From positions 62,001 through 126,000 of IMG/VR virus record IMGVR_UViG_3300022868_000009: a DNA stretch of 64,000 nucleotides, one strand, 5' to 3'. The position numbers and the translations under genes were made by a program. This document shows positions 20,637-62,400 of this stretch, piece after piece. Each line of letters opens with the position of its first letter. Within the stretch, counting starts at the first letter, position 1. The notes beneath the pieces were generated by a model. That model saw only the letters and a list, made by a program, of their open reading frames with translations. It made no database searches and had not been told where the DNA came from.

Positions 20637-21089
20637 TTAACCATTCAATTCTCTTTCAGTATCTCTTTCAATATCCCTATTTTTAATAGATTCTTTCTTT
20701 TGAAATAATTTTTTACCTTTAGCCAATGCAATTTCTACTTTAGCTAAACCTTTATCATTAATAAATAATCTTGTTGGTACAATTGTTAACCCTTTTTCAC
20801 TAACACCCTTTTTGAGTTTCTTCAATTGTTTCTTAGTTAATAACAATTTTCTATCACGTTTTGGTTCATGATTATTAATAGTACCCATTTCATATTCAGC
20901 AATATGAAGACTTTTTAAATACAATCCATCTTCTTTAAAAATGCAAAATGAATCTGTAAAAGAAACATTACCATTTCTAATAGATTTAATTTCAGTACCT
21001 AATAATATCATACCAGCTACATATGTATTTATCCACTCATATAAGTATGAGGCTTTTTTATATTTTATATTTATATCTTTATTTTGCAT
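20637..21089 (-). CDS. smpB: SsrA-binding protein SmpB
   Basis: AGMILLGTEIKSIR, NHEPKRDRKLLL, GLTIVP, KVEIALAKGKK, IKNRD. Confidence 0.95.
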   Translation of the reverse strand: MQNKDINIKYKKASYLYEWINTYVAGMILLGTEIKSIRNGNVSFTDSFCIFKEDGLYLKSLHIAEYEMGTINNHEPKRDRKLLLTKKQLKKLKKGVSEKGLTIVPTRLFINDKGLAKVEIALAKGKKLFQKKESIKNRDIERDTERELNG

Positions 21090-21142
21090 ATGAATTTATG
21101 AATTTAAATTTTAAATATATAGTTTTAAATCTTATCATAAAT

Positions 21143-21856
21143 ATGATCAAAAGTTTTAAAAATTATCTTCTTATAAAAGAGTCAAGTCAATATTCAAAAA
21201 TGATTGATTTCACTCTTGTAAAACTTGAATACAAAAAAGAAGAAATAATTAATACTTGTCTAGAAGCTATTGAAACAAAGCCATATTGTATTTGTATACT
21301 ACCAAAATACATAGATTTAGTTAAAAATTTAGTTGATGGTAAAGGAATTAAAATTGCAACTGTAATTGATTTTCCAGAAGGAAATGGAACATATACAGAA
21401 AAAATACGTCAAACAAAACAAGCAATTGATAAAGGGGTTGATGAATTAGAAATGGTAATTGATTATAATAAGATTCAAAAACTAGAAAACTTACCAGAAG
21501 AACAATATGATAAACTTTATGAAACAATAAAGAAACCTGTTAAAGAATTTGGTAATTTATGTATAAAAAATAATATAACTTCAAAAATTATAATTGAAAC
21601 AGGCATATTAACATTAGATCAAATTAAAATTGCTTTAAACATATTAATTGATTGTGATATTGATTATGTTATGACTTCAACTGGATTTGCTGAAACTGGG
21701 GCGGAAGAAAAAAAGGTTAAATTTATAAATGATATAATACCTCATAATTCTAAACTTAAAATTAAAGTGTCAGGTGGGATAAGAGAATCCAATGATATTA
21801 AAAAGTTCTACTCTAAAGGTGCAAGAAGATTTGGCACATCAGCTATAATTGGATAA
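21143..21856 (+). CDS. deoC: Deoxyribose-phosphate aldolase (paralogue 1)
   Basis: IDFTL, ATVIDFPEG, DELEMVID, KIIIETG, TSTGF, IKVSGGIR, RFGTS; note MTSTG where KTSTG is usual. Confidence 0.85.
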   Translation: MIKSFKNYLLIKESSQYSKMIDFTLVKLEYKKEEIINTCLEAIETKPYCICILPKYIDLVKNLVDGKGIKIATVIDFPEGNGTYTEKIRQTKQAIDKGVDELEMVIDYNKIQKLENLPEEQYDKLYETIKKPVKEFGNLCIKNNITSKIIIETGILTLDQIKIALNILIDCDIDYVMTSTGFAETGAEEKKVKFINDIIPHNSKLKIKVSGGIRESNDIKKFYSKGARRFGTSAIIG

Positions 21857-22090: not shown

Positions 22091-23020
22091 TTAAGTTATT
22101 ATATTCATCATAAACAAAATATATATTCCATTAGATAGGCTTCTTAAATCTAATTCTGAATCTCCATTTAAAACTAATTGTCCTGTTGAATTATAAAGAT
22201 TTGTTTTTACATTATTATCAGAAACTTTTACATAATCAGTTGTAGGGTTAGGATATACTGTTACATTTGATTCGATATTTTCAACTTCTATTTTTTCTGT
22301 AGTTAAATCATAAAGTGAAATAATTTCAGATTCATTAAGAACTTTATCATAGATTGTAATATCATCTAAAATACCATTAAGAAAGTTTGCATTACCAATT
22401 TTAAATATCTCGATATCATTGATTGTTGTACCAGTAAAAAGACCATCACTAGCACTAGTACTGTAAGATTCATGTAAAATTGTATTACCATCGAATAAAT
22501 ATAAATTATAAACATTATCAGAAGAAGAACAAGTAATAGAATAAAAGTACCATGAATCATTTTCTGAAAGTGTTATTTCACAGGATTTTCCTCCATATTG
22601 ATATCCATATGATTGAAGTCTTAACTTATTATGGTCGACAATCAATTCAATAAATTTGTAAGGACCAATACATCTCAATTTAAATACATTACCTTCAGTT
22701 GAATTGTCAATTTTAATCCATCCCGTTATACTAATAGAATCTAAATCCAAATTATTTAAGGTATATGGATCAATATCTATATCACCACCATTAAAAGAAT
22801 AAGCATCGTTATTTAACCCACTGTGTCCTACATCAGGTGTAATATTACCAAGTAAAATATCATCCATATCACCAACAAACCAATTTGATGTTTCATCCCA
22901 TACATATCCTTCTATGATATCGGTTTCGTAATTAAATTTCCATTCTGCAATGGGGTTAAGTTGTGAAATGCTTACCAAACAGAATATTGTCATTATCAAA
23001 GTTAAAAAGATTTTTTTCAT
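22091..23020 (-). CDS. Secreted LamG/concanavalin-like protein with T9SS C-terminal sorting domain (C-terminus frameshifted)
   Basis: Signal peptide; SITGWIK...GILDDITIYDKVLNESEI; VYPNPTTD...YNSTGQLV...LSNGIYIL; final KIIKQ* lies in another frame ending 22062. Confidence 0.75.
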   Translation of the reverse strand: MKKIFLTLIMTIFCLVSISQLNPIAEWKFNYETDIIEGYVWDETSNWFVGDMDDILLGNITPDVGHSGLNNDAYSFNGGDIDIDPYTLNNLDLDSISITGWIKIDNSTEGNVFKLRCIGPYKFIELIVDHNKLRLQSYGYQYGGKSCEITLSENDSWYFYSITCSSSDNVYNLYLFDGNTILHESYSTSASDGLFTGTTINDIEIFKIGNANFLNGILDDITIYDKVLNESEIISLYDLTTEKIEVENIESNVTVYPNPTTDYVKVSDNNVKTNLYNSTGQLVLNGDSELDLRSLSNGIYILFMMNIIT

Positions 23021-23149
23021 AATTTTAGTTTTTTGTAGTTAGTTAATATTTTATTTCTGATTCAGTTTAAATATACTACATTTTTTCAAGAATAAAAAAT
23101 TTAATGAAAAATATTAAACAACCCCCTCAACTATAATATATATTTTTAT

Positions 23150-23365
23150 ATGAATATAAAAAAGTTAGAACTTAGAAATTTTAAGTCTTTCGGTAACGCA
23201 ACTCAGGTTTTAGAATTTGATGATGATGGAAAACTTATTTTTCTCTCAGGAAAAAATGGATCGGGAAAGTGCGTTTCTCCTGATACTATATTAGAAATAG
23301 AAGTCGATGATGATATTAAACTTCAATTGATTGAATTTTTAGAAAAAAGAAATTTGCCGTTGTAG
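23150..23365 (+). CDS. gp46/SbcC ATPase N-extein (40 aa, to Walker A GKNGSGK) fused to 31-aa N-intein
   Basis: MNIKKLELRNFKSFGN...SGKNGSGK then CVSPDT (intein block A). Confidence 0.9.
   Translation: MNIKKLELRNFKSFGNATQVLEFDDDGKLIFLSGKNGSGKCVSPDTILEIEVDDDIKLQLIEFLEKRNLPL
23270..23362 (+). mobile_element. Split intein N-fragment (short, atypical)
   Basis: Cys1 start CVSPDTILEI directly after the Walker A lysine; ORF stops 31 aa later. Confidence 0.85.
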
Positions 23366-23385
23366 CCTAGTTAATATATAAAAAT

Positions 23386-24612
23386 ATGTTAACTAAAGAA
23401 AAATTAAACAATGACAATTTTTTCAAAAATTTTAAAGAATGTTATATCATACATCTTGTTGAAGAATATGGTGATCATTGTACAGACAAATTAAAAAATA
23501 AAATTAAACAAGATTTAAAAACCTGTTGCGAAAAAAATTCAATTAAAAGTCTACCCAATAGAAATAAAAACTACTGGTTAATTAGAGGATGGTCTATGGA
23601 AGAAACAACACTTAAAATAAACGATATTAATAATTTGAGAAAGAAAATTAAAATTACTATTTTAAATAAAGAATTTTGGATTGAAAAAGGTTTCACCGAA
23701 ATAGAATCTATCAAAAAAATCTCAAAAATTCAAAGTGAAAGATCCAAGAAAATGCATAAGAAAAGAAAAGAAAATCCAGAAAATTACAAACCAATACTAT
23801 CACCATTTACTGAAGAATTTTGGATTAAAAAGGGTATTACAAATAAAGAAGAAATTAATTTTAAAATAAAATCTCAAAGAAAACTTAATGTAGAATTTTG
23901 GTTAAATAGAGGACATAACACCAAAGAATCAATTAAATTAGTTAAAAATTATCAATCTGAAAATTCAAAAAAACGTCAAGATAAATGGAAAGATAAAAAA
24001 CATTTAGTTGATTATTTAAAACAATTTAACACAAATATAGAATTTTATTTAGATAAAGGTTTTTCTATAGAAAAAAGCCAAGAATTATTAAAAGAAAGAC
24101 AATCAACTTTCACTTTAGAAAAATGTATTATTAAACATGGATTTAAAAATGGTACTTTAATATTTAATAATAGACAAACAAAATGGAAAGAAAAAGTCTT
24201 TAATGAAAATACTTGTATTGCTAATGGTACGAGTATGATATCAGAAAAATATATACATTCTGTGATAAGCAAAATTAACAATGATAAAATTACAGATCTT
24301 TTCAAATATGGAAAAGACGAAAAATTTATTTATGATAATAAATTAAAAAAATGTTACAAATATGATTTAACTTATAAGAAAAAAATAGTGGAATTTCATG
24401 GTGATTTTTGGCATTGTAACCCAAAAATATATAATGAAAATGAAATACACAAAGTAATTAAATTAACAAGCAAAGAAATTTGGGCTAATGATAAAAGGAA
24501 AAAAGATTGTGCTGTTGAGAATAATTATGATATTTTTATAATTTGGGAAAGCGAATATTTACATGATCCTGTCAAAAGTATTGAAAATACAATAAAATTT
24601 TTAGAATTATGA
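23386..24612 (+). CDS. Free-standing Vsr-like homing endonuclease between the split-intein halves
   Basis: Repeated FWIxKG units; YKYDL...IVEFHGDFWHCNP...WANDKRK...IIWESE. Confidence 0.8.
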   Translation: MLTKEKLNNDNFFKNFKECYIIHLVEEYGDHCTDKLKNKIKQDLKTCCEKNSIKSLPNRNKNYWLIRGWSMEETTLKINDINNLRKKIKITILNKEFWIEKGFTEIESIKKISKIQSERSKKMHKKRKENPENYKPILSPFTEEFWIKKGITNKEEINFKIKSQRKLNVEFWLNRGHNTKESIKLVKNYQSENSKKRQDKWKDKKHLVDYLKQFNTNIEFYLDKGFSIEKSQELLKERQSTFTLEKCIIKHGFKNGTLIFNNRQTKWKEKVFNENTCIANGTSMISEKYIHSVISKINNDKITDLFKYGKDEKFIYDNKLKKCYKYDLTYKKKIVEFHGDFWHCNPKIYNENEIHKVIKLTSKEIWANDKRKKDCAVENNYDIFIIWESEYLHDPVKSIENTIKFLEL

Positions 24613-24971
24613 AAATTACAATAAAAGATTTATATGATTTTAACTTAGAAACTGACTTAATAAATAAAGGTAAATTTAAAGTTAAAACTAAGAATGGTTT
24701 TAAAAAAATTGATGCAATTGATATAACTGACATTAGTTCAAAAATTGTGATAAATACAAAAAGTGATAAAATTAAAACATCACCAGATCATCTTTTATCA
24801 AAATTTGACGATTGGATATTTGTCAAAAATTTAAAAATTGGTGATTATATTGATTGTATTAATGGTCCCGAACAAATTACCAATATTGAAATTGATGAAA
24901 TAGTAGAAGAATTATATGATATTCAAGTTGATGGAGAAGAATATTTTGCAAATAACTTTAGAACTCATAAT
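24609..24971 (+). mobile_element. Split intein C-fragment (long)
   Basis: Ends His-Asn at 24971 followed by Ser+1; splicing restores GKNGSGKSS. Confidence 0.85.
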
Positions 24972-26576
24972 TCATCTTTACGACAATGTATAGACTTTGC
25001 ACTATTCCATAAAGTTAGAGGTAAAACAAAAAAAGTTCTTTCAGTTAAGAAACTACCAAATAGACACAATAAAAGTCTTTATGTTGGATTATGGTTTGAT
25101 AATTATAAAGGTGATGAAATAGTTATTAAAAAATATCTAGAACCACAAAAATTCGAAATGACAATAAATGAAGAACCATTTGAGAAAAAATTCTCTAAAA
25201 TGACTGATCCTGAAAAAGAAAATCTACTAGGATTTAGTTATAACATATTTCAAAACTTCATATCAATGTCACTTAATAACTTCAAAAATTTTGTATCATT
25301 ATCTAAAGATGATAAAGAAACAGTCCTAAATAAATTATTTAATTTAGAAGAACTAAATTCACTACAAAATATAACAAAACAACTAAAAAAAGACTTACAA
25401 AAGAACAGATCTAGTGTTTATGAAGAATTGCAAGAGAAAAAGACAAGAATAGATGAATTAAATAATATTATATCAAAATTAAACTCTAATAATAGTATAA
25501 ATAAAGTAGAAAGAATCAAAGAGATTAATATCAAATTAGTTGAATATAAAAACAGAAGTGGTATATTAACCAATAAGAATATCGAAATTAGTAAAGAAAT
25601 TGAAGTTTATAATCAAAAATTAATGAAATTTGCTAGTAATAAAACACAAGGAGATAGAATGATTACAACAAACGAACTTAAAATTGAAAACATAGAAGAA
25701 AAATTAGATGCTTTCAATAAAGGAATATGTCCTATATGTGATAGTAATTTAAATACTAATAAACATAAATCAAAAATTGGTGAATTTAGTACAACTGTAA
25801 AAAAATTAAATGAAAAAAACGAAGAAGTTGAAGAACAATTAATAAAAGTAGTAACACTTGATACAAAATATAGAAATAAAAAGAGTACTTTGTATAATGA
25901 ATTAAGTAAGAATAAACAAGAACTTGATTTAATCAAAGAAAATTTTACTAAATTTAAATTAGAAAAATCTTCATTAAAACAACAAAACTTTGATTCTATT
26001 GATGAATTAAACAAAGAAAAAGAGCTACACAAAAAAAGAGTTAATTCATTATTACCTAATTTTAATAAATATAAAGATAAAGAACCAATTTATGATGAAC
26101 TAATTAATATATTTTCAGGTGATGTTATTAGAAATAATATTATTAAAAATATATTAAAATCAGTTAATTATTATCTTCAAGATTTTTTAACCAAATTAGA
26201 ATATCCATATGACGTTGAATTGGACATGAATTTCAATGCCATAATTAAAGAAAAAGAAAAAATCGACCCTGAAACATTATCTGGAGGAGAAGATAAAAAA
26301 ATTAATGTTGCTATTGCTTTATCATATTTGTGTTTAATACTTGATGTTAAACATAGTAATTTATTATTTTTAGATGAAATATTTGATTCAATTGACATTG
26401 AAAGTGTAGACTTATTATTGAACTTACTTAAAGAAATATCAGAAAAATATAAAATCAATATTATCATTGTTCACCATAATGATGTTAATTTACAACATTT
26501 TGATAGAATAATTAGAACTAAAAAAGATTTATTTAGTGATATTGAAGAAATTGATTTAGTAAATGAGAAGAATTAA
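24609..26576 (+). CDS. C-intein (121 aa) fused to gp46/SbcC C-extein (recombination endonuclease ATPase)
   Basis: TSPDH (block B), YDIQVD...THN then S (blocks F/G); coiled coil with CPIC hook, LSGGE signature, LFLDEIFD Walker B. Confidence 0.9.
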   Translation: MKITIKDLYDFNLETDLINKGKFKVKTKNGFKKIDAIDITDISSKIVINTKSDKIKTSPDHLLSKFDDWIFVKNLKIGDYIDCINGPEQITNIEIDEIVEELYDIQVDGEEYFANNFRTHNSSLRQCIDFALFHKVRGKTKKVLSVKKLPNRHNKSLYVGLWFDNYKGDEIVIKKYLEPQKFEMTINEEPFEKKFSKMTDPEKENLLGFSYNIFQNFISMSLNNFKNFVSLSKDDKETVLNKLFNLEELNSLQNITKQLKKDLQKNRSSVYEELQEKKTRIDELNNIISKLNSNNSINKVERIKEINIKLVEYKNRSGILTNKNIEISKEIEVYNQKLMKFASNKTQGDRMITTNELKIENIEEKLDAFNKGICPICDSNLNTNKHKSKIGEFSTTVKKLNEKNEEVEEQLIKVVTLDTKYRNKKSTLYNELSKNKQELDLIKENFTKFKLEKSSLKQQNFDSIDELNKEKELHKKRVNSLLPNFNKYKDKEPIYDELINIFSGDVIRNNIIKNILKSVNYYLQDFLTKLEYPYDVELDMNFNAIIKEKEKIDPETLSGGEDKKINVAIALSYLCLILDVKHSNLLFLDEIFDSIDIESVDLLLNLLKEISEKYKINIIIVHHNDVNLQHFDRIIRTKKDLFSDIEEIDLVNEKN

Positions 26577-27045
26577 TATTATAGTAGCAATTGGTCAGAA
26601 CAATGAAATTGGTTGTAATAATAAATTGCCTTGGAATATACCAGAAGATTTAAAAAGATTCAAAGAATTAACATTAAATCATCCTGTTATAATGGGAAGA
26701 AAAACCTTTGAAAGTATTGGCAAACCATTATCAAACAGATTAAATATTGTTATTAGTAATAATGATAATTTCTCAAGTAAAGGTATAATTAAAATGAATT
26801 CTCTTACTAATGCTTTAAAATATATACATCAAGAGGAAGTTTTTATAATTGGTGGTGCTCAAATATATGAACAATCTATATATTTAGCTGATAAACTATA
26901 TATAACAAGAATATTTGATACATTTGAAGCTGATACATATTTTCCAAAAATAGATTTAAAATACTGGAAACTAGAACAAATTGAAAGCAACACTAATAAA
27001 TCTACGTTATCTTACACATTTGAAAATTACATAAGAAAATATTAA
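26563..27045 (+). CDS. folA: Dihydrofolate reductase
   Basis: IG..NKLPWNIPEDLKRFK, VIMGRKTFESIGKPL..RLNIV, IIGGAQIY, ADTYFP. Confidence 0.95.
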   Translation: MRRINIIVAIGQNNEIGCNNKLPWNIPEDLKRFKELTLNHPVIMGRKTFESIGKPLSNRLNIVISNNDNFSSKGIIKMNSLTNALKYIHQEEVFIIGGAQIYEQSIYLADKLYITRIFDTFEADTYFPKIDLKYWKLEQIESNTNKSTLSYTFENYIRKY

Positions 27046-27072: not shown

Positions 27073-28122
27073 ATGAAAGAAATTGATGTTATAGATAAGT
27101 TTTACAGAAATTTACCAACCCCTACTTCTATGTGGAAGTATGTTAATGGTTCATTCATATTGATTAATTTCAATAATGAATTAGAATCTATAACCAACAA
27201 TAATATTGAAAATTATTTAGGTCAAGCATCTTATTCTATTTATGATGATGCTGAAATAACAGAACAAATGAATATTTGTTATAATACCAAAGAAGTTGTA
27301 AAAAAAGACTATATACTTGACGATAAAACAATAAGAACAACATATGTTTTTGTTGAGCCAGATTATTTAATTGTTCAATCAGAAGATATTACCAATCAAA
27401 AATCTTTAATAAAAAAATTCAAAAACTTAAATGAGGAATACATGGCTCAAAACGAAGAATTAAATCAATTTGCATATTTAGCTTCACATGATTTACAAGA
27501 ACCATTAAGAACAATTAGTGGTTTTATTTCACTTTTAAAAGTAAGTTATAAAAATGATTTAGATGAAAAATCTGAAAAATATATGGAATATATAGAAAGT
27601 GCTATTGATAGAATGCAGAATATGATTGATGATATTTTAAATTATTCTAAATTAAAGAATGGTATTGAAGATTTAGATGAAGTAAATTTAAAAGAATTAA
27701 TACATGAAATATATTTAGATTTGAAGAGTTTGGTTGATGATGGAGAATTAACATTAATAACAGAAAATTTACCAACCATTAGAGCTGATAAAAATTTAAT
27801 GTATAGTTTATTTCAAAATTTAATAACAAATGCTGTAAAATATAGAAGTGAAGAATTACCGATAATTGAAATAGATTGGGATGAGAATGAGAATTATTAT
27901 AAATTTACAGTTAAAGACAATGGAATAGGAATTGAAAAAGAATATAAAAATAAAATATTTGATGTTTTTTACAGATTGCATAGCAAATCAAAATATGAAG
28001 GTACGGGCATTGGTTTATCAATTTGTAAAAAGATCATAGAATTACATAAAGGTAAAATTTGGGTTGATTCAGTATTAGGTATAGGTAGTACGTTTAACTT
28101 TACTTTAAAAAAAACAAGATAA
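27073..28122 (+). CDS. Cytoplasmic sensor histidine kinase (Cph1-like transmitter, PAS-like N-terminus)
   Basis: FAYLASHDLQEPLR H-box; FQNLITNAVKY, VKDNGIGI, GTGIGL, GSTF. Confidence 0.92.
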   Translation: MKEIDVIDKFYRNLPTPTSMWKYVNGSFILINFNNELESITNNNIENYLGQASYSIYDDAEITEQMNICYNTKEVVKKDYILDDKTIRTTYVFVEPDYLIVQSEDITNQKSLIKKFKNLNEEYMAQNEELNQFAYLASHDLQEPLRTISGFISLLKVSYKNDLDEKSEKYMEYIESAIDRMQNMIDDILNYSKLKNGIEDLDEVNLKELIHEIYLDLKSLVDDGELTLITENLPTIRADKNLMYSLFQNLITNAVKYRSEELPIIEIDWDENENYYKFTVKDNGIGIEKEYKNKIFDVFYRLHSKSKYEGTGIGLSICKKIIELHKGKIWVDSVLGIGSTFNFTLKKTR

Positions 28123-28125
28123 AGT

Positions 28126-28494
28126 ATGAAAATACTAATGATTGAAGACAGTGAACCTGATAGAGTATTAATCAAAGAATCATTTGACAATTGCACTTAT
28201 TATACTATATTAGATTATGCAGAAGATGCAAGTGAAGCTTTAAATTATTTATCTAAAACAATACCAGATTTAATTTTATTGGATTTAAACCTTCCGAAGG
28301 TTTCTGGATTTGATTTATTAGAAAAATTGAAAAAAAACCCAAAATATAAAGAAATACCTGTAATAATATTAACTGCTTCGAATAATGTACAATATGTGAA
28401 AATGGCATATAAATTATATGCAAATTCTTATATTACAAAACCTATGGATGCAGAGAATTTCTTAAGATATTGGTTTGAGGTTGTAGAATTATAA
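28126..28494 (+). CDS. Single-domain response regulator (Rcp1-like)
   Basis: ILMIEDS, PDLILLDLNLPKVSG, IPVIILT, ANSYITKP. Confidence 0.9.
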   Translation: MKILMIEDSEPDRVLIKESFDNCTYYTILDYAEDASEALNYLSKTIPDLILLDLNLPKVSGFDLLEKLKKNPKYKEIPVIILTASNNVQYVKMAYKLYANSYITKPMDAENFLRYWFEVVEL

Positions 28495-50119: not shown

Positions 50120-51050
50120 GTAAAATATAGTCTGTGCTTGGGCAGACGTTCATCTTCGGATGGAGCAGATAAAACATCGTAAGGTGTCGAAAGAGAGGAA
50201 GGTCACTTATTCTCGCCAATAGTCTTCGGATTATGGTCAATCTAAGCAAGTCTCATTTTTGTCTTGACCAACAAGACAGCCTCAATAGAAAGGGGATAAG
50301 ATGAAACAACGTGAGTAACGATCTTTGGTAAGAATAAGATGGCTCAATTGCCCGCAAGGGGAACAAAAGTTATCAAATATAGAATGGGGACATTCCAATA
50401 TCGTTTAATCCACTCATTAAGTGTTCGTTGATAGATAAGAGATAGAATAGTAGTTCGAATGTGGAAAGTTAGAGCATTATTCAGTTTCAAAGGTGTTGAA
50501 AGATGTCTTAACAAACGGCACAGTAAGTCCTCCGGGCTGAAACGCATACGAAGGGTCGTATTTTGTAAGGTGAAACTTATGAATCGGTGGACAGGCACTT
50601 TGTGGTGATATCATTTTTTATTAGCTCACAATGGTAGAGCAGTAGTATTCTAACTAAAGGTAGATGGTTCAATTCCATCATAAAAAAAGCAAAGTCCCTG
50701 TCCGTCTGTTAAGTAAAGGTGCTTAAAACTTTACACTTCGGTGAATAAAGTGGATTCAAAGCTCGCAAGGTAGAGAATCTTTGATACAGTAGCCTCAACT
50801 TTTAACCCTAGCAGGTTATTAACGCCACGATAGTGGTGAGTGTACGCAAAATATCGAGTAACTTAATAGTACTAGTGATGTAACCACATAAAAAGTTACA
50901 GTACAGCTGGTGTACATAGTTGCCTTTCGAGGGATTATGTGGACAATTCAGGAACGAAGAATAGCAACTCTTTGATAATCTGAAGAAAGCAAAACATATA
51001 ATAAACTGTGTGTTTTACCAGTATGACAGTTTTTAGTCTCAAAATTGTTT
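50120..51050 (+). ncRNA. Large ornate ncRNA, GOLLD-like (boundaries approximate)
   Basis: No credible ORF; GC-richer than flanks; UUCG/GCAA hairpins at 50151-50162, 50219-50234, 50351-50360, 50734-50743, 50923-50932; embedded tRNA-like element; terminal stem with AGUCUC loop at 51026-51048; next to tRNA genes. Confidence 0.6.
50615..50687 (+). pseudogene. tRNA-like element inside the large ncRNA (all-AU acceptor stem, 6-nt anticodon loop)
   Basis: TTTTTAT/ATAAAAA acceptor, GCTC/GAGC D-stem, GATGG-TTCAATT-CCATC T-arm. Confidence 0.75.
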
Positions 51051-51450
51051 CTCTATCAAGATAAAAACCTTGACGTGGTGATAGAGCTTTAAACTAATAT
51101 TTATCAAATGTGAAAAAAGTAGTAGAAATTAAAAGACGCAACACGCAGCCCGTTCTCTGCGCTACTTCACAAAAATGTGAACGATAAAAATCTTCACATT
51201 TAAATACACCAAGAATAACACCATCACTGTAGCCCTAAAGGAGTGATGTTGTCGCATAAAAACGATTAGTGTTAGTGTGTGTTTGAGAAGACGACGGGGG
51301 ATTTCACAAAAGTAACATGAATCAAGTAGTGTGAAATAAGAAATTCCTCCAAGTTTTCTCGGAAAATTTTTTTATGCAAGAAATAATTTGTATATTGTCA
51401 AAAATAGAGAATAAATATTTAATATATAAAAAATAGTAAAAACAGAAACA

Positions 51451-51537
51451 ATGAATAATACTTTTAAACATAATAGTTCATCTTTTCATAAGTGGTTTAG
51501 CCGCTTCGGATCGGGAATGTTATGCCTTAAAAGTTAA
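51451..51537 (+). CDS. Putative attenuator leader peptide 1 (MNNTFKHNSSSFHKWFSRFGSGMLCLKS)
   Basis: 28-codon ORF ~30 nt after TAATATATA motif; overlaps antiterminator strand; F/H/W codons match downstream tRNAs. Confidence 0.7.
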   Translation: MNNTFKHNSSSFHKWFSRFGSGMLCLKS

Positions 51538-51566
51538 GATTAAAAAATATTAATCAACAAAGGGAC

Positions 51567-51604
51567 AAACTCGATTCTAACAAGATTCGGGTTTTTTGTT
51601 TTTT
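51567..51604 (+). terminator. Intrinsic terminator upstream of tRNA-His/Trp/Phe (attenuator)
   Basis: AAACTCGATTCT-AACA-AGATTCGGGTTT then T-tract. Confidence 0.8.
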
Positions 51605-51626
51605 ATAAACGTTCTTAAAAATATAT

Positions 51627-51702
51627 GGTGGTTATAGTGTTAGTGGTAGCACGGCAGGTTGTGGTTCTGTTAGGATGGATTCAAATTCCATTAATCACCC
51701 CA
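51627..51702 (+). tRNA. tRNA-His(GTG), encoded G-1 and CCA
   Basis: Cloverleaf; GCAGG-TTGTGGT-TCTGT anticodon arm. Confidence 0.92.
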
Positions 51703-51712
51703 AATTTAACAC

Positions 51713-51783
51713 AGGTCTATAGTGTAACGGTAGCATAAGTGATTCCAAACCACTTGGTCCGGGTTCAAATCCTGGTAGGCCTG
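51713..51783 (+). tRNA. tRNA-Trp(CCA)
   Basis: AGGTCTA/TAGGCCT acceptor; TTCCAAA loop; CCGGG-TTCAAAT-CCTGG. Confidence 0.92.
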
Positions 51784-51852
51784 CGAGAAGTTTAAATATG
51801 GTTAAATGAAGGATGGTTAAAAGGTAGAAAAATGAAATATTAATACAAATTT

Positions 51853-51925
51853 GGAACCGTGGTGTAGGTGGTCTGCACGATACTCTGAAGAAGTATAGGT
51901 ACCCGTTCAACTCGGGTCGGTTCCA
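51853..51925 (+). tRNA. tRNA-Phe(GAA)
   Basis: GGAACCG/CGGTTCC acceptor; ATACT-CTGAAGA-AGTAT. Confidence 0.9.
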
Positions 51926-52002
51926 CTTTAAACTTTTAAATTTTAATATATATTAATGTGAAGAAAGAACCAGTTTTAATGAAAAATAATAAAAATTAAC
52001 AA

Positions 52003-52749
52003 ATGAAAAAATATACACAATTTAGTAAATCTTTAGAAAAAATCAATCAAAATATGGAATTATTTGAAAAAGCTATCGATCAAAATCAAAAAGAAAAAAT
52101 AGATAGATATATTAATGCAAACAATTACAAAAAAGTTCTATCAGAACTAAAACAAATTATTTTTAATTTAAAAAAAGAAATTAAAAATTCCAATTTTGAT
52201 GATTTCATTTATAAACAGAACAATAAAGATATAGAAATAATATATAATCCGACTATTCGTGGTATTTTAACCTATTTAGATGGTAAAAGAGTAGAATTTG
52301 AATATGGAAAAGAAGAGAATCAACAAAAAATCTTAAACACTATCTATATTGATGGTGAAAGAGACCCATTTTTAGATATAACTATTCAACCACCATTTAA
52401 TCAGATACATATTAATAATGGTTTGCCAGTTTTTATGAAAGGTCTAGGATTAGGTAAAAAAGTTTACAAAAAACTAATTAAAGATTTTGGTTATCTTTCT
52501 TCTTTTAAAGGAATAAAACCTTCTATTGAAAGTGATTTGGTTTGGGATACTTTAGCTGATGATAGAGAATTGTTCACTTTTGTGAATGATAACAATATCA
52601 TTTGTTTTTGGAATGAAGTAGATTATGATATTATAATTATTAAATTGAAAGAATTTTACAAAATAAAAGGACAAAAAATCTTTGATAACGATTTTAAAAA
52701 GTTATATAACTTAACTGATGAAAAAATAGAACAAATAATTAATATATAA
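52003..52749 (+). CDS. Hypothetical protein, possible GNAT-like motif
   Basis: MKGLGLGKKVY resembles acetyl-CoA-binding motif A. Confidence 0.5.
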   Translation: MKKYTQFSKSLEKINQNMELFEKAIDQNQKEKIDRYINANNYKKVLSELKQIIFNLKKEIKNSNFDDFIYKQNNKDIEIIYNPTIRGILTYLDGKRVEFEYGKEENQQKILNTIYIDGERDPFLDITIQPPFNQIHINNGLPVFMKGLGLGKKVYKKLIKDFGYLSSFKGIKPSIESDLVWDTLADDRELFTFVNDNNIICFWNEVDYDIIIIKLKEFYKIKGQKIFDNDFKKLYNLTDEKIEQIINI

Positions 52750-52767
52750 AGAAAATCAATTTTAAAC

Positions 52768-53016
52768 ATGAAAATTAAAAGATATAATGAATCATTAATT
52801 GATAATGATAATAACACTAGAGAAGATTTCAATGAAGAAATTGATGATCTAATATCAGAATTAAAGATAAGATATAATAATTTTAATAATTTAATTGATT
52901 CATACAAAATAATAGAAAAAAGTAAAACAGAAGAATGGGAAAAAGTTAGAAATGAACTAAGAGGCGCATTTGATGGTTTTAAAAATGAATTAATACAAAA
53001 AATTAAAAAATTTTAA
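52768..53016 (+). CDS. Hypothetical protein (MKIKRYNES tag)
   Basis: ORF after TAATATATA motif. Confidence 0.55.
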   Translation: MKIKRYNESLIDNDNNTREDFNEEIDDLISELKIRYNNFNNLIDSYKIIEKSKTEEWEKVRNELRGAFDGFKNELIQKIKKF

Positions 53017-53019
53017 ATA

Positions 53020-53094
53020 ATGATTATAATTAACATAAATAGTAAATCGAAAAAGAATAGTCGTCTGAAAACGGCTCGGAATTGTATTACCTAA
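53020..53094 (+). CDS. Putative attenuator leader peptide 2 (MIIININSKSKKNSRLKTARNCIT)
   Basis: 24-codon ORF; AGT AAA TCG AAA AAG AAT AGT cluster matches downstream Lys/Ser tRNAs; contains 1:2 hairpin and antiterminator strand. Confidence 0.7.
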   Translation: MIIININSKSKKNSRLKTARNCIT

Positions 53095-53116
53095 ATTTTT
53101 AGGTACAAAGAATTAC

Positions 53117-53146
53117 AAACCGAGTCTGAAAAGATTCGGTTTTTTT
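53117..53146 (+). terminator. Intrinsic terminator 2 nt before tRNA-Lys (attenuator)
   Basis: AAACCGAGTCT-GAAA-AGATTCGGTTT plus T-tract. Confidence 0.85.
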
Positions 53147-53148
53147 AT

Positions 53149-53226
53149 TGGCCATTAGCTCAGTAGGTTTAGAGCATCTGCCTTTTAAGCAGAGAGTCCA
53201 GGGTTCGATCCCCTGATGGCCAACCA
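53149..53226 (+). tRNA. tRNA-Lys(TTT) with encoded CCA
   Basis: TGGCCAT/ATGGCCA; TCTGC-CTTTTAA-GCAGA; CAGGG-TTCGATC-CCCTG. Confidence 0.95.
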
Positions 53227-53228
53227 AT

Positions 53229-53301
53229 GGATCTGTAGCTCAGTTGGTAGAGCTTCTGCCTTTTAAGCAGAAAGTCCAGGGTTCGAGTCCGACTAGGTCC
53301 A
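53229..53301 (+). tRNA. tRNA-Lys(TTT), second copy with mispaired T-stem
   Basis: GGATCTG/TAGGTCC; same anticodon arm; T-stem CAGGG/CCGAC pairs only 2 bp. Confidence 0.7.
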
Positions 53302-53305
53302 CTAA

Positions 53306-53420
53306 GGCTTATAACAAATAGGTTGTATTTATAGAGCATTTGTCGGGTTACCGCATGTCACTAAAATGTATATTTTAAGAGTTACTAGAGATATATGAGG
53401 TTCGAATCCTTAATAAGCCA
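53306..53420 (+). ncRNA. tRNA-like RNA (acceptor stem and T-arm intact, enlarged non-canonical centre)
   Basis: GGCTTAT/ATAAGCC-A; TGAGG-TTCGAAT-CCTTA; 115 nt. Confidence 0.65.
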
Positions 53421-53424
53421 CTAT

Positions 53425-53508
53425 GGAAAGCGTCCGGTTGGACGAGGGGCTACTCTTGAAAAGTAGTAATGGGTTACACCATTAGGGGTTCGAATCCCTT
53501 GCTTTCCG
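53425..53508 (+). tRNA. tRNA-Ser(TGA)
   Basis: CTACT-CTTGAAA-AGTAG; long variable arm; G discriminator. Confidence 0.93.
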
Positions 53509-53512
53509 CTAT

Positions 53513-53600
53513 GGAAGAGTACCCAAGTTGGTGAAGGGGCTGGTTTGCTAAACCAGTAGGTCTGAAATACGGCGCGTGGGTTCGAGCCCCACTTCTTCCG
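53513..53600 (+). tRNA. tRNA-Ser(GCT)
   Basis: CTGGT-TTGCTAA-ACCAG; long variable arm; G discriminator. Confidence 0.93.
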
Positions 53601-53648
53601 CAATTAGGTTTGAAACTCAGTTGGTGACCTACTAAGAAAGATATTTCA

Positions 53649-61847: not shown

Positions 61848-62400
61848 GACATCCTTGTCCTCTTAAATGAGCATCAGGTCTTTGTAAAAATACTCCATGA
61901 TTAGGACATTTTATTTTTACTTTTGTTTTATTATTAAAATATTTAACTTCACTATAATTATACTTATTATTATGAATTTTATTTGATCTTATTATAAATT
62001 CTTCCGTAGTTAATTTATATCTACCACCACATTTAGAACAACCATGTCCACTTAGATGATTTGAAGGTGTTTGCCAAAATTCACCATGTTTAAGACATAT
62101 TATTCTCACTTTAGTTTTACTATTTACATAATTAACAAAACTATAATCATATTTATCATCATGAACTATATTTGATTTATTAATAAATGATTCTGTATCA
62201 TCTTTCATATTATTAGTTGCACAAACAGGACAACCTTGTCCTTCTAAATGTTTAGAAGGACTTTGCCAAAATTCACCATGTTCAAAACATATTATTCTCA
62301 CTTTAGTTTTACTATTTACATAATTAACAAAACTATAATCATATTTATCATCATGAACTATATTTGATTTATTAATAAATTCAATTAATTTAATTTTCAT
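61834..62400 (-). CDS. DUF723-like zinc-binding repeat protein (endonuclease-associated DNA-binding repeats, no nuclease domain)
   Basis: Three FIxxSNxxH..KYxYS...C..HG.F.Q...HL.G.GCxxC repeats; first two near-identical in DNA. Confidence 0.7.
   Translation of the reverse strand: MKIKLIEFINKSNIVHDDKYDYSFVNYVNSKTKVRIICFEHGEFWQSPSKHLEGQGCPVCATNNMKDDTESFINKSNIVHDDKYDYSFVNYVNSKTKVRIICLKHGEFWQTPSNHLSGHGCSKCGGRYKLTTEEFIIRSNKIHNNKYNYSEVKYFNNKTKVKIKCPNHGVFLQRPDAHLRGQGCPKCC

Follow-up and report, generated by a model that had tools for sequence, protein, structure and literature searches.

Genes that are fractured by split inteins, where a gene for a free-standing endonuclease lies between the two intein halves, are an established arrangement, as the earlier note on this DNA had held; they were described by Dassa et al. 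in 2009 (PMC2677866), and in half of the fractured genes in that work the endonuclease belongs to a Vsr-like family (PMC2677866) that was later named EDxHD (PMC3239194). Natural atypically split inteins, in which a short N-terminal fragment (IntN) of 15–37 amino acids (aa) is paired with a long C-terminal fragment, IntC (PMC13014065), provide a second point of reference. Only four are named in the literature searched, AceL-TerL, GOS-TerL, VidaL and PolB16; VidaL and PolB16 OarG are split at the site called S1, and AceL-TerL, GOS-TerL and the consensus Cat intein at S2 (PMC13014065, PMC10189870). These inteins are prized because an IntN this short is within reach of peptide synthesis, which is of use in protein semisynthesis and labelling, and the same literature agrees with the earlier note that short-N splits are both rare and useful (PMC10189870, PMC13014065). 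A third precedent concerns the insertion site, since P-loops are classic intein sites in other ATPases, including DnaB site b, MCM site a and RFC-S site a (PMC4760082). Here we analyze a 64,000-nucleotide (nt) stretch, positions 62,001 to 126,000 of IMG/VR virus record IMGVR_UViG_3300022868_000009 (the window), in which the gene for a gp46/SbcC-like ATPase is broken within its Walker A motif. We consider it highly likely that this is a fractured phage gp46 in which an intein inserted between Lys40 and the Ser next to it is itself interrupted at S1 by a Vsr-like homing-endonuclease gene, and that the two halves are joined by trans-splicing. We document the anatomy, homology, folds and conservation of the locus, its allelic series and the predicted docking of its parts, and from these we infer splicing as well as the activity and target of the endonuclease. 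Arrangements of this kind are already known; gp46/SbcC as the host, and the insertion site within it, are new as far as the literature searched goes.

Three open reading frames (ORFs) on the plus strand make up the locus, and direct reading of the sequence found all of them where the earlier note had placed them. ORF1 (23150–23365, 71 aa) joins a 40-aa gp46/SbcC head to a 31-aa IntN, ORF2 (23386–24612, 408 aa) is the endonuclease gene in the gap, and ORF3 (24609–26576, 655 aa) joins a 121-aa IntC to the remainder of gp46. The N-extein (23150–23269), the first 40 aa of the ATPase, ends in the Walker A sequence GKNGSGK. Directly after it, ORF1 residues 41–71 read CVSPDTILEIEVDDDIKLQLIEFLEKRNLPL and divide into an IntN core, CVSPDTILEIEVDDD (23270–23314), with the catalytic Cys1 and the first HINT strands, and an IntN tail, IKLQLIEFLEKRNLPL (23315–23362), which provides an extra helix at the split-site loop. 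The ORF1 stop codon TAG is followed by CCT AGT TAA (23363–23374, read directly from the sequence), and a 20-nt spacer separates ORF1 from ORF2. The TGA of ORF2 overlaps the ATG of ORF3 as ATGA. The IntC (24609–24971) holds every HINT motif but the first: ORF3 residues 1–121 contain ...KTSPDHLL..., with block B as SPDH, and blocks F and G as LYDIQV…FANNFRTHN, and they end in ...LYDIQVDGEEYFANNFRTHN. From residue 122 the protein continues as SSLRQ..., the C-extein (24972–26576), which is the remaining gp46/SbcC from the +1 Ser onward with its coiled coil, CPxC zinc hook and signature/Walker B region. The division read from the letters alone, with 40 aa of ATPase ending in GKNGSGK and a 31-aa IntN beginning CVSPDT in the 71-aa ORF, and with a 121-aa IntC ending in THN and then SS and the rest of the ATPase after the gap gene, thus stands: coordinates and profiles agree on the first part, and on the second the phrog_77 match lies in the portion that begins at residue 122.

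This layout closely recalls the loci of Dassa et al. (PMC2677866), in which the 3′ end of the endonuclease gene likewise lies over the start of the IntC and a hairpin is found at the endonuclease start. In the window a 12-bp RNA hairpin (23368–23395, plus strand), identified by its fold z-score, has the ORF2 start codon within its 3′ arm, as in the start-sequestering hairpins of those authors; its z-score is −3.16, and none of 200 shuffled sequences was as stable. The hairpin, which is not conserved in the related locus L004 or at the terminase locus of the same genome, possibly dampens translation of the endonuclease. The single terminase locus of Dassa et al. shows the same unusual split, with a 122-aa IntC that lacks only motif N1 (PMC2677866). 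There are also differences. The overlap is 4 nt here and 6–69 bp in the Dassa loci, and their eight host types exclude gp46/SbcC, although an SbcD-like gene among their findings is fractured by a Vsr-like ORF without an intein (PMC2677866). The P-loop inteins described elsewhere are mostly contiguous and reside in cellular helicases and clamp loaders (PMC4760082), whereas this one is split and resides in a phage ABC-type (Rad50/SMC-like) ATPase.

The identity of the host protein follows from its ABC-type head, coiled coil and CxxC zinc hook, the combination found in gp46/SbcC/Rad50 ATPases. ORF1 residues 1–40 match AAA_23, phrog_77 ("SbcC-like subunit") and, below the Pfam cut-off, SMC_N, and P0002 and other homologues without the intein align with them at their N-termini. 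ORF3 matches phrog_77 at E 6.9e-38 over residues 130–650; its match to SbcC_Walker_B (E 0.0017) reaches 19 bits, below the Pfam cut-off of 27, and the Pfam match to Rad50_zn_hook is weak. The zinc-hook residues C374, P375 and C377 and the ATPase motifs are invariant among the relatives of ORF3, and the protein is about 25% identical to T4-type gp46 (tblastn). In relative L007 a Metallophos gene lies immediately upstream.

Comparison with alleles that lack the element defines the insertion precisely. The intein-less homologue P0002, 69% identical, reads GLNGSGK-SSIRQ, while the intein-less homologues in LR756502 and LR756504 read GNNGNGK-SSLLE and GINGGGK-SSTLE, so that the insertion is in frame and the host motif G(S/T)GK-SS is continuous in the empty orthologues. 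Another empty allele comes from X5, a marine run, in which one contig joins position 23259 to 24982 through 20 other letters and decodes to GKNGTGK-SSLRQCIDF, precisely the empty allele; its flanks are close to those of the window, at least 90% alike where the shorter side spans at least 50 letters. The contig suggests that both forms of the gene, empty and fractured, occur together in nature. Because intein-less homologues read GK-SS at the junction, splicing would restore an ordinary Walker A loop, and the +1 Ser is, by alignment, the Walker A Ser/Thr itself. The earlier note had predicted GKNGSGK-SS as the spliced sequence, which equals what the empty alleles encode. It had also not recognized the gp46 P-loop as a host site for inteins, and the literature searched, InBase not being part of it, yielded no report of an intein in gp46, SbcC or Rad50.

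A Pfam scan of the whole ORFs returned no intein or nuclease domain, and both were identified through the isolated IntC, through profiles and through fold searches. About 20 homologues of 650–663 aa share the N-terminus of ORF3. Comparison with intein hidden Markov models, which the earlier note had proposed, places these sequences among inteins, with PF14890 matched by 17 of 17 family members. Searched against the PDB, a profile of the IntC family matches CatC (3e-9), VidaL (1.4e-8), NrdJ-1 (4e-8) and gp41-1 (8e-8); CatC, the engineered consensus of atypically split TerL inteins, and VidaL are thus the best sequence matches to the window intein. The residues expected to carry out splicing are strictly maintained. 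P59, H61, D104, H120, N121 and S122 are invariant in 18 sequences, although ORF3-type proteins are just 27–45% identical overall to that of the window, and Cys41 of ORF1 (the Cys1 of CVSPDT), which directly follows the Walker A GK, is invariant in all nine N-fragments examined. Block B, usually TxxH, takes the form SPxH with a nearly invariant S58, and blocks F and G supply the penultimate His, the terminal Asn and the +1 Ser.

The relative P0006 (710 aa) has the same intein in unsplit form, ...GRNGSGK|CLSPDTTIEIIGYDDV-MKNITLKELYDF..., and was used for an AlphaFold model with 16 IntC rows as the alignment. The model has a predicted local distance difference test score (pLDDT) of 85–96 over the intein; it matches the VidaL intein best (E 4.8e-11, template-modeling score 0.83, root-mean-square deviation (rmsd) 2.1 Å), and all 50 of its top 50 matches are HINT domains. 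By sequence, and by fold evidence that is indirect because it comes through the P0006 model, the pieces in the window belong to the HINT family, and the HINT fold together with Cys1 in block A is that expected of a class 1 intein. Like the known atypically split inteins, this one has a short IntN, a long IntC that holds blocks B, F and G, and a cysteine at position 1. Each half is encoded in an ORF of its own, complete with start and stop codons, and the association between them is a prediction.

The position of the split can be read from the unsplit relative. The IntN core of about 15 residues corresponds to the first 16 residues of the P0006 intein, and the start of the IntC maps to an internal residue of P0006, Met57; the alignment therefore puts the split at S1, right behind the first strands and before block B. 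VidaL and PolB16 are split at the same place, and the AceL and GOS TerL inteins, at S2, are not. The window intein differs from VidaL, PolB16 and the TerL inteins in its host protein and site and in combining Cys1 with Ser+1; it is known from sequence, and its IntN has an extra 16-aa helix beyond the core of about 15 aa. The last 16 residues of the IntN, which form this tail, are conserved in split relatives and absent from unsplit P0006. Another unsplit relative, P0283, has a tail-like helix followed by a linker in the same loop, where other unsplit relatives have variable insertions; since a similar helix is present in P0283, the tail is likely to be intein-loop sequence and not something brought in by the endonuclease. 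Through this locus at least 25 diverged short-N variants from nature, with a Cys1/Ser+1 pair, become accessible as a family, together with natural unsplit relatives that show the split position; the family is a possible source of new protein-ligation tools.

We had also considered that the IntN tail (…FLEK…) and the start of the IntC (MK[IV]TIK) travel with the endonuclease as a cassette. Both motifs are common to the gp46 and TerL loci of this genome beyond chance, which fits with the relatedness of the two inteins. The cassette idea was mostly rejected on finding MK.IT.K in unsplit P0006 and the tail-like helix in unsplit P0283.

In the proposed mechanism ORF1 and ORF3 would be translated separately, the start of ORF3 overlapping the endonuclease stop codon in the ATGA. 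The 31-aa IntN and 121-aa IntC would then associate into a HINT fold, Cys1 would form a thioester by an N-S shift, the +1 Ser would attack this thioester, and Asn121 would cyclize, with ligation of the exteins into an active 574-aa gp46 that has an intact GKNGSGK-SS P-loop. Mobility would most likely be maintained by the endonuclease, which would cut alleles without the element so that repair copies it in; either the empty gp46 site or the unsplit intein could serve as the target. Association of the two halves is supported by structure prediction. When ORF3 residues 1–160 were modeled with ORF1 and scored by ipSAE against controls, the pair reached 0.82 and the best control 0.01; this mark is attained by 58 of 80 solved complexes and by 2 of 110 mismatched pairs. 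Between runs at least 67% of contacts are shared, and partner pLDDT is at least 60. ORF1 residues 38–53 are predicted to pair as a strand with ORF3 residues 2–8 and 23–26, Cys41 to adjoin ORF3 residues 119–122, and tail residues 56–67 to pack on ORF3 residues 10–17. The extra IntN helix may tune the affinity between the halves.

Tight association would also serve a docking module, to which the tail helix would add interface. It is conceivable that the intein halves no longer splice and simply hold the gp46 fragments together non-covalently, for which the fragmented NrdA of phage Aeh1 is reported to provide a precedent (PMC3045599). Docking by itself would not require Cys1, H61, D104, H120, N121 and S+1 to be invariant across diverged relatives. 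It would also leave an unspliced 152-aa domain between the Lys and the Ser of Walker A, where the empty alleles show a continuous native loop. We regard such a non-splicing module as improbable, and trans-splicing as much the better account.

The distribution of the element bears on both its function and its mobility. The locus is not unique, in that at least 25 clusters of public metagenome proteins begin with the same IntC. Allele states at the GK|S site were counted on the best 150 cluster representatives of 2,401 gp46-family matches: the site is empty in roughly 93–103 of them, fractured (the protein starts with the IntC) in at least 25 plus two variants, occupied by a homologous unsplit mini-intein in six, P0006 also being unsplit, and occupied by a LAGLIDADG maxi-intein in one. 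The last of these, P0156, is a metagenomic protein of 955 aa with a 381-aa classical intein and a nested LAGLIDADG endonuclease at a GK|C site. Since this maxi-intein sits at the same gp46 site, two mobility strategies appear to target one position. The gap itself also varies among the seven split loci examined (the window and six relatives). A full endonuclease of 395–408 aa is present in the window and in L004–L006 and L011, which thereby share the whole trio of genes; a nuclease core of 125–126 aa is all that is found in L007 and L010, and L012 has an unrelated ORF of 438 aa. In L012 (864–4399), a diverged relative, the IntN fragment is 99 aa long and the 438-aa gap ORF has neither Vsr-like motifs nor a Pfam match; it may have taken the place of the endonuclease. 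Unlike the Dassa set, the present one offers four kinds of allele at a single site (empty, unsplit, maxi-intein and fractured), and because one site occurs empty, with maxi- or mini-intein, and fractured with full or truncated endonuclease, the gene-breaking model of Dassa et al. becomes directly testable.

Trees of the exteins, a quick tree and a 133-row FastTree, indicate that the element was gained and lost more than once, as a mobile element would be. The window groups with the empty P0002 as its sister (support 100), unsplit P0006 is sister to a split form, and the states are interleaved, so that the 133-row tree needs 21 state changes, at least 12–17 of which are forced by well-supported branches. 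In addition, among 170 diverged pairs there are 164 whose inteins resemble each other more than their exteins do (59% versus 36%). It is this combination of interleaved states with intein identity in excess of extein identity that points to repeated gain and loss. We suggest, tentatively and with more doubt than conviction, that splitting goes both ways, an endonuclease gene breaking contiguous inteins and split inteins healing when the endonuclease gene is deleted. Four observations favor healing: unsplit P0006 is nested among split forms on the extein tree; the Met that starts the IntC survives inside P0006 as an internal residue; a copy of the tail helix typical of split forms, with a short linker after it, is retained in unsplit P0283; and the seven unsplit alleles stand one by one in scattered places on that tree. 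If healing does occur, nature would provide at this site a time series for the gene-breaking model, with the extra IntN helix acting as an affinity clamp under selection in split forms only.

The same comparisons speak to the possibility that the locus is a decaying pseudogene, in which insertion of the endonuclease killed an intein-containing gp46 and erosion of the pieces is still to come. Genes are indeed inactivated by homing-endonuclease cassettes, the gap ORF is truncated in some relatives, and the expected Mre11 partner is not adjacent. Nonetheless, intact ORFs and conserved motifs persist in at least 25 clusters at 27–45% overall identity, the ATPase motifs and zinc hook are invariant, and the same genome has fractures of the same kind in TerL and PolB, both necessary to a tailed phage. 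Decay therefore seems very unlikely to explain the locus, even less likely than docking without splicing.

The gap gene was called Vsr-like in the earlier note, and the fold of its C-terminal domain upholds that description. ORF2 has no Pfam match, and a full-length profile compared with PDB sequences gave spurious matches only, from Lys/Glu-rich repeats. Its family is nevertheless large, with 174 metagenomic matches, a few of them labeled Vsr endonuclease by the Joint Genome Institute, and a relative in Tenacibaculum phage PTm1 has the same label. The AlphaFold model of ORF2 (pLDDT 93) and the family consensus divide it into an N-terminal region of tandem helical modules (23386–24231) and a C-terminal nuclease domain of the Vsr-like/EDxHD fold (24232–24612; …IVEFHGDFWHCNP…IWESEY…). 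The N-terminal region is all helical, with repeats of the type [FY]W..KG.S.EE visible in the family consensus as 5–6 tandem modules, and by analogy with the NUMOD/helix-turn-helix region of I-Bth0305I (PMC3239194) it is probably DNA-binding. For the catalytic domain, residues 283–408 align with E. coli Vsr (1cw0) at Z 11.2 and with I-Bth0305I (3r3p) at Z 10.3 (rmsd 2.5 Å, 93 of 97 residues; VIA-align), Z scores well above those of unrelated rows, and the Foldseek probability is 0.98. D327, E336, D340, H343 and D369 are at least 90% conserved among 33 relatives, and the local motif EFHGDFWH presumably resembles that of Vsr. The likeness to I-Bth0305I extends to the C-terminal position of the Vsr-fold nuclease, the conserved acidic and His residues and the helical N-terminal region, and both proteins are tied to a self-splicing element in a phage repair gene, if ORF3 splices as we propose. 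The two differ in that I-Bth0305I is encoded inside a recA group I intron and ORF2 is free-standing inside a split intein; they are about 16% identical, and the N-terminal region of ORF2 is longer (PMC3239194). No site of the I-Bth0305I type, TTxG-N6-CxAA, is present near either candidate target, empty or unsplit.

Since Vsr-like endonucleases also occur in group I introns (PMC2677866, PMC3239194), the halves might instead be joined at the level of RNA by an intron with an endonuclease ORF, or during translation, by read-through with a tRNA of CTA anticodon. For read-through, ORF1 does end in TAG, and a suppressor-type tRNA is encoded at 50614–50688. The earlier note had named RNA-level joining as an outcome that would overturn its interpretation; no Rfam family was found in 22900–25200 even at E ≤1, and the flanks encode complementary halves of a HINT domain. 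Read-through would add just three residues, a TAA lying two codons past the TAG, and ORF2 is in another frame. We consider joining by either route exceedingly improbable. Amber read-through or an alternative genetic code was rejected on the TAA two codons after the TAG and on stop-codon usage, which looks standard in long ORFs. The CTA-anticodon tRNA gene, of amber-suppressor type and named "Pyl" by ARAGORN, belongs to a cluster of eight tRNA genes at 50614–53601.

The window is part of one virus record of 344,634 bp with 25% GC, about 48% complete by CheckV, and the source is a huge phage that is found in several salt-lake and marine metagenomes. The public phages nearest by gp46 similarity are the "uncultured phage" genomes LR756501-4 and LR745206, of 634–735 kb. 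A record assembled from a metagenome and about 48% complete invites the suspicion of a chimera or an artefact of assembly at the locus. Other samples and studies have contigs that show zero differences at both junctions: those of X4 cover 23314–23685 and 24474–26222 across the junctions, and those of X5 cover 23150–23580. ORF1, ORF2 and ORF3 are each present on 3–6 contigs, and the same trio recurs in diverged relatives. An artefact is accordingly scarcely credible.

Several points weigh against a fractured, trans-splicing gp46. Splicing in trans is itself deduced from sequence and from models, and a search for RNA runs listed none. The IntC of the window taken alone falls below the Pfam gathering threshold (PF14890, E 2e-4), and its block B reads SPxH, with Ser where Thr is usual. 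Part of the complex score may come from solved split inteins that the prediction model has memorized. The empty allele from X5 is a single contig at depth 2, and the contrast between intein and extein identity could arise partly from a fast-evolving coiled coil and not from transfer. No Mre11/gp47 partner gene adjoins the gp46 locus in a record that is about 48% complete, and a search for one gave just a weak partial match (C1:225811-226107), about 140 kb away. Finally, because two relatives carry truncated versions of 125–126 aa and one a different gap ORF, decay of the endonuclease may be under way in some lineages, and the one in the window could lack activity.

The arrangement recurs in the same genome. 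ORF2-type genes number exactly three, each within the gap of a fractured gene, namely gp46, TerL and PolB. The fractured large terminase, with an ORF2 paralogue of 328 aa in its gap, lies just outside the window (L001:10077-13952 = G000 C1:134077-137952). TerL is broken in its own Walker A motif, …SRQTGK|CNSF… / …NNILSHN|TVSA, by a short-N/long-C split whose IntC starts MKVTIK with the same ATGA overlap, an architecture that resembles the atypically split AceL and GOS TerL inteins. As a P-loop intein at GK|C…HN|T it is analogous to the gp46 element, and the two inteins are related yet distinct (hhalign 95.9%, E 5e-9, 28% identity). The third gene, a family-B DNA polymerase on the minus strand with an ORF2 paralogue of 390 aa in the gap (L001:3581-6780 = G000 C1:127581-130780), is broken at YGDTD|S by a canonically split intein, with a long IntN and an IntC of about 49 aa; the middle PolB piece starts at motif B, and the N-terminal part of PolB is not adjacent. 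If splicing takes place as proposed, gp46, TerL and PolB, all of them core enzymes of a single huge phage, would depend on trans-splicing. Directly upstream of the middle PolB fragment, a 533-aa ORF on the minus strand (L001:6817-8418) has a DUF7487 domain and a nuclease-like motif, EFNGLYWHS; it may be another endonuclease that breaks PolB a second time.

A scan for sigma-70 promoters and terminators was uninformative in DNA of 23% GC. Upstream of gp46 lies a gene for a DeoC-family aldolase (21023–21856), which is syntenic in relatives L002 and L010, and the 3′ end of gp46 is overlapped by 14 nt by a dihydrofolate reductase gene (26563–27045). Beyond the latter, at 27073–28494, a histidine kinase gene (HisKA and HATPase_c) adjoins a stand-alone response-regulator receiver gene. 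The phage protein encoded at 22091–23020 on the minus strand combines a LamG-like lectin domain with a type IX secretion C-terminal sorting domain, and because of these two domains a host among the Bacteroidota is indicated.

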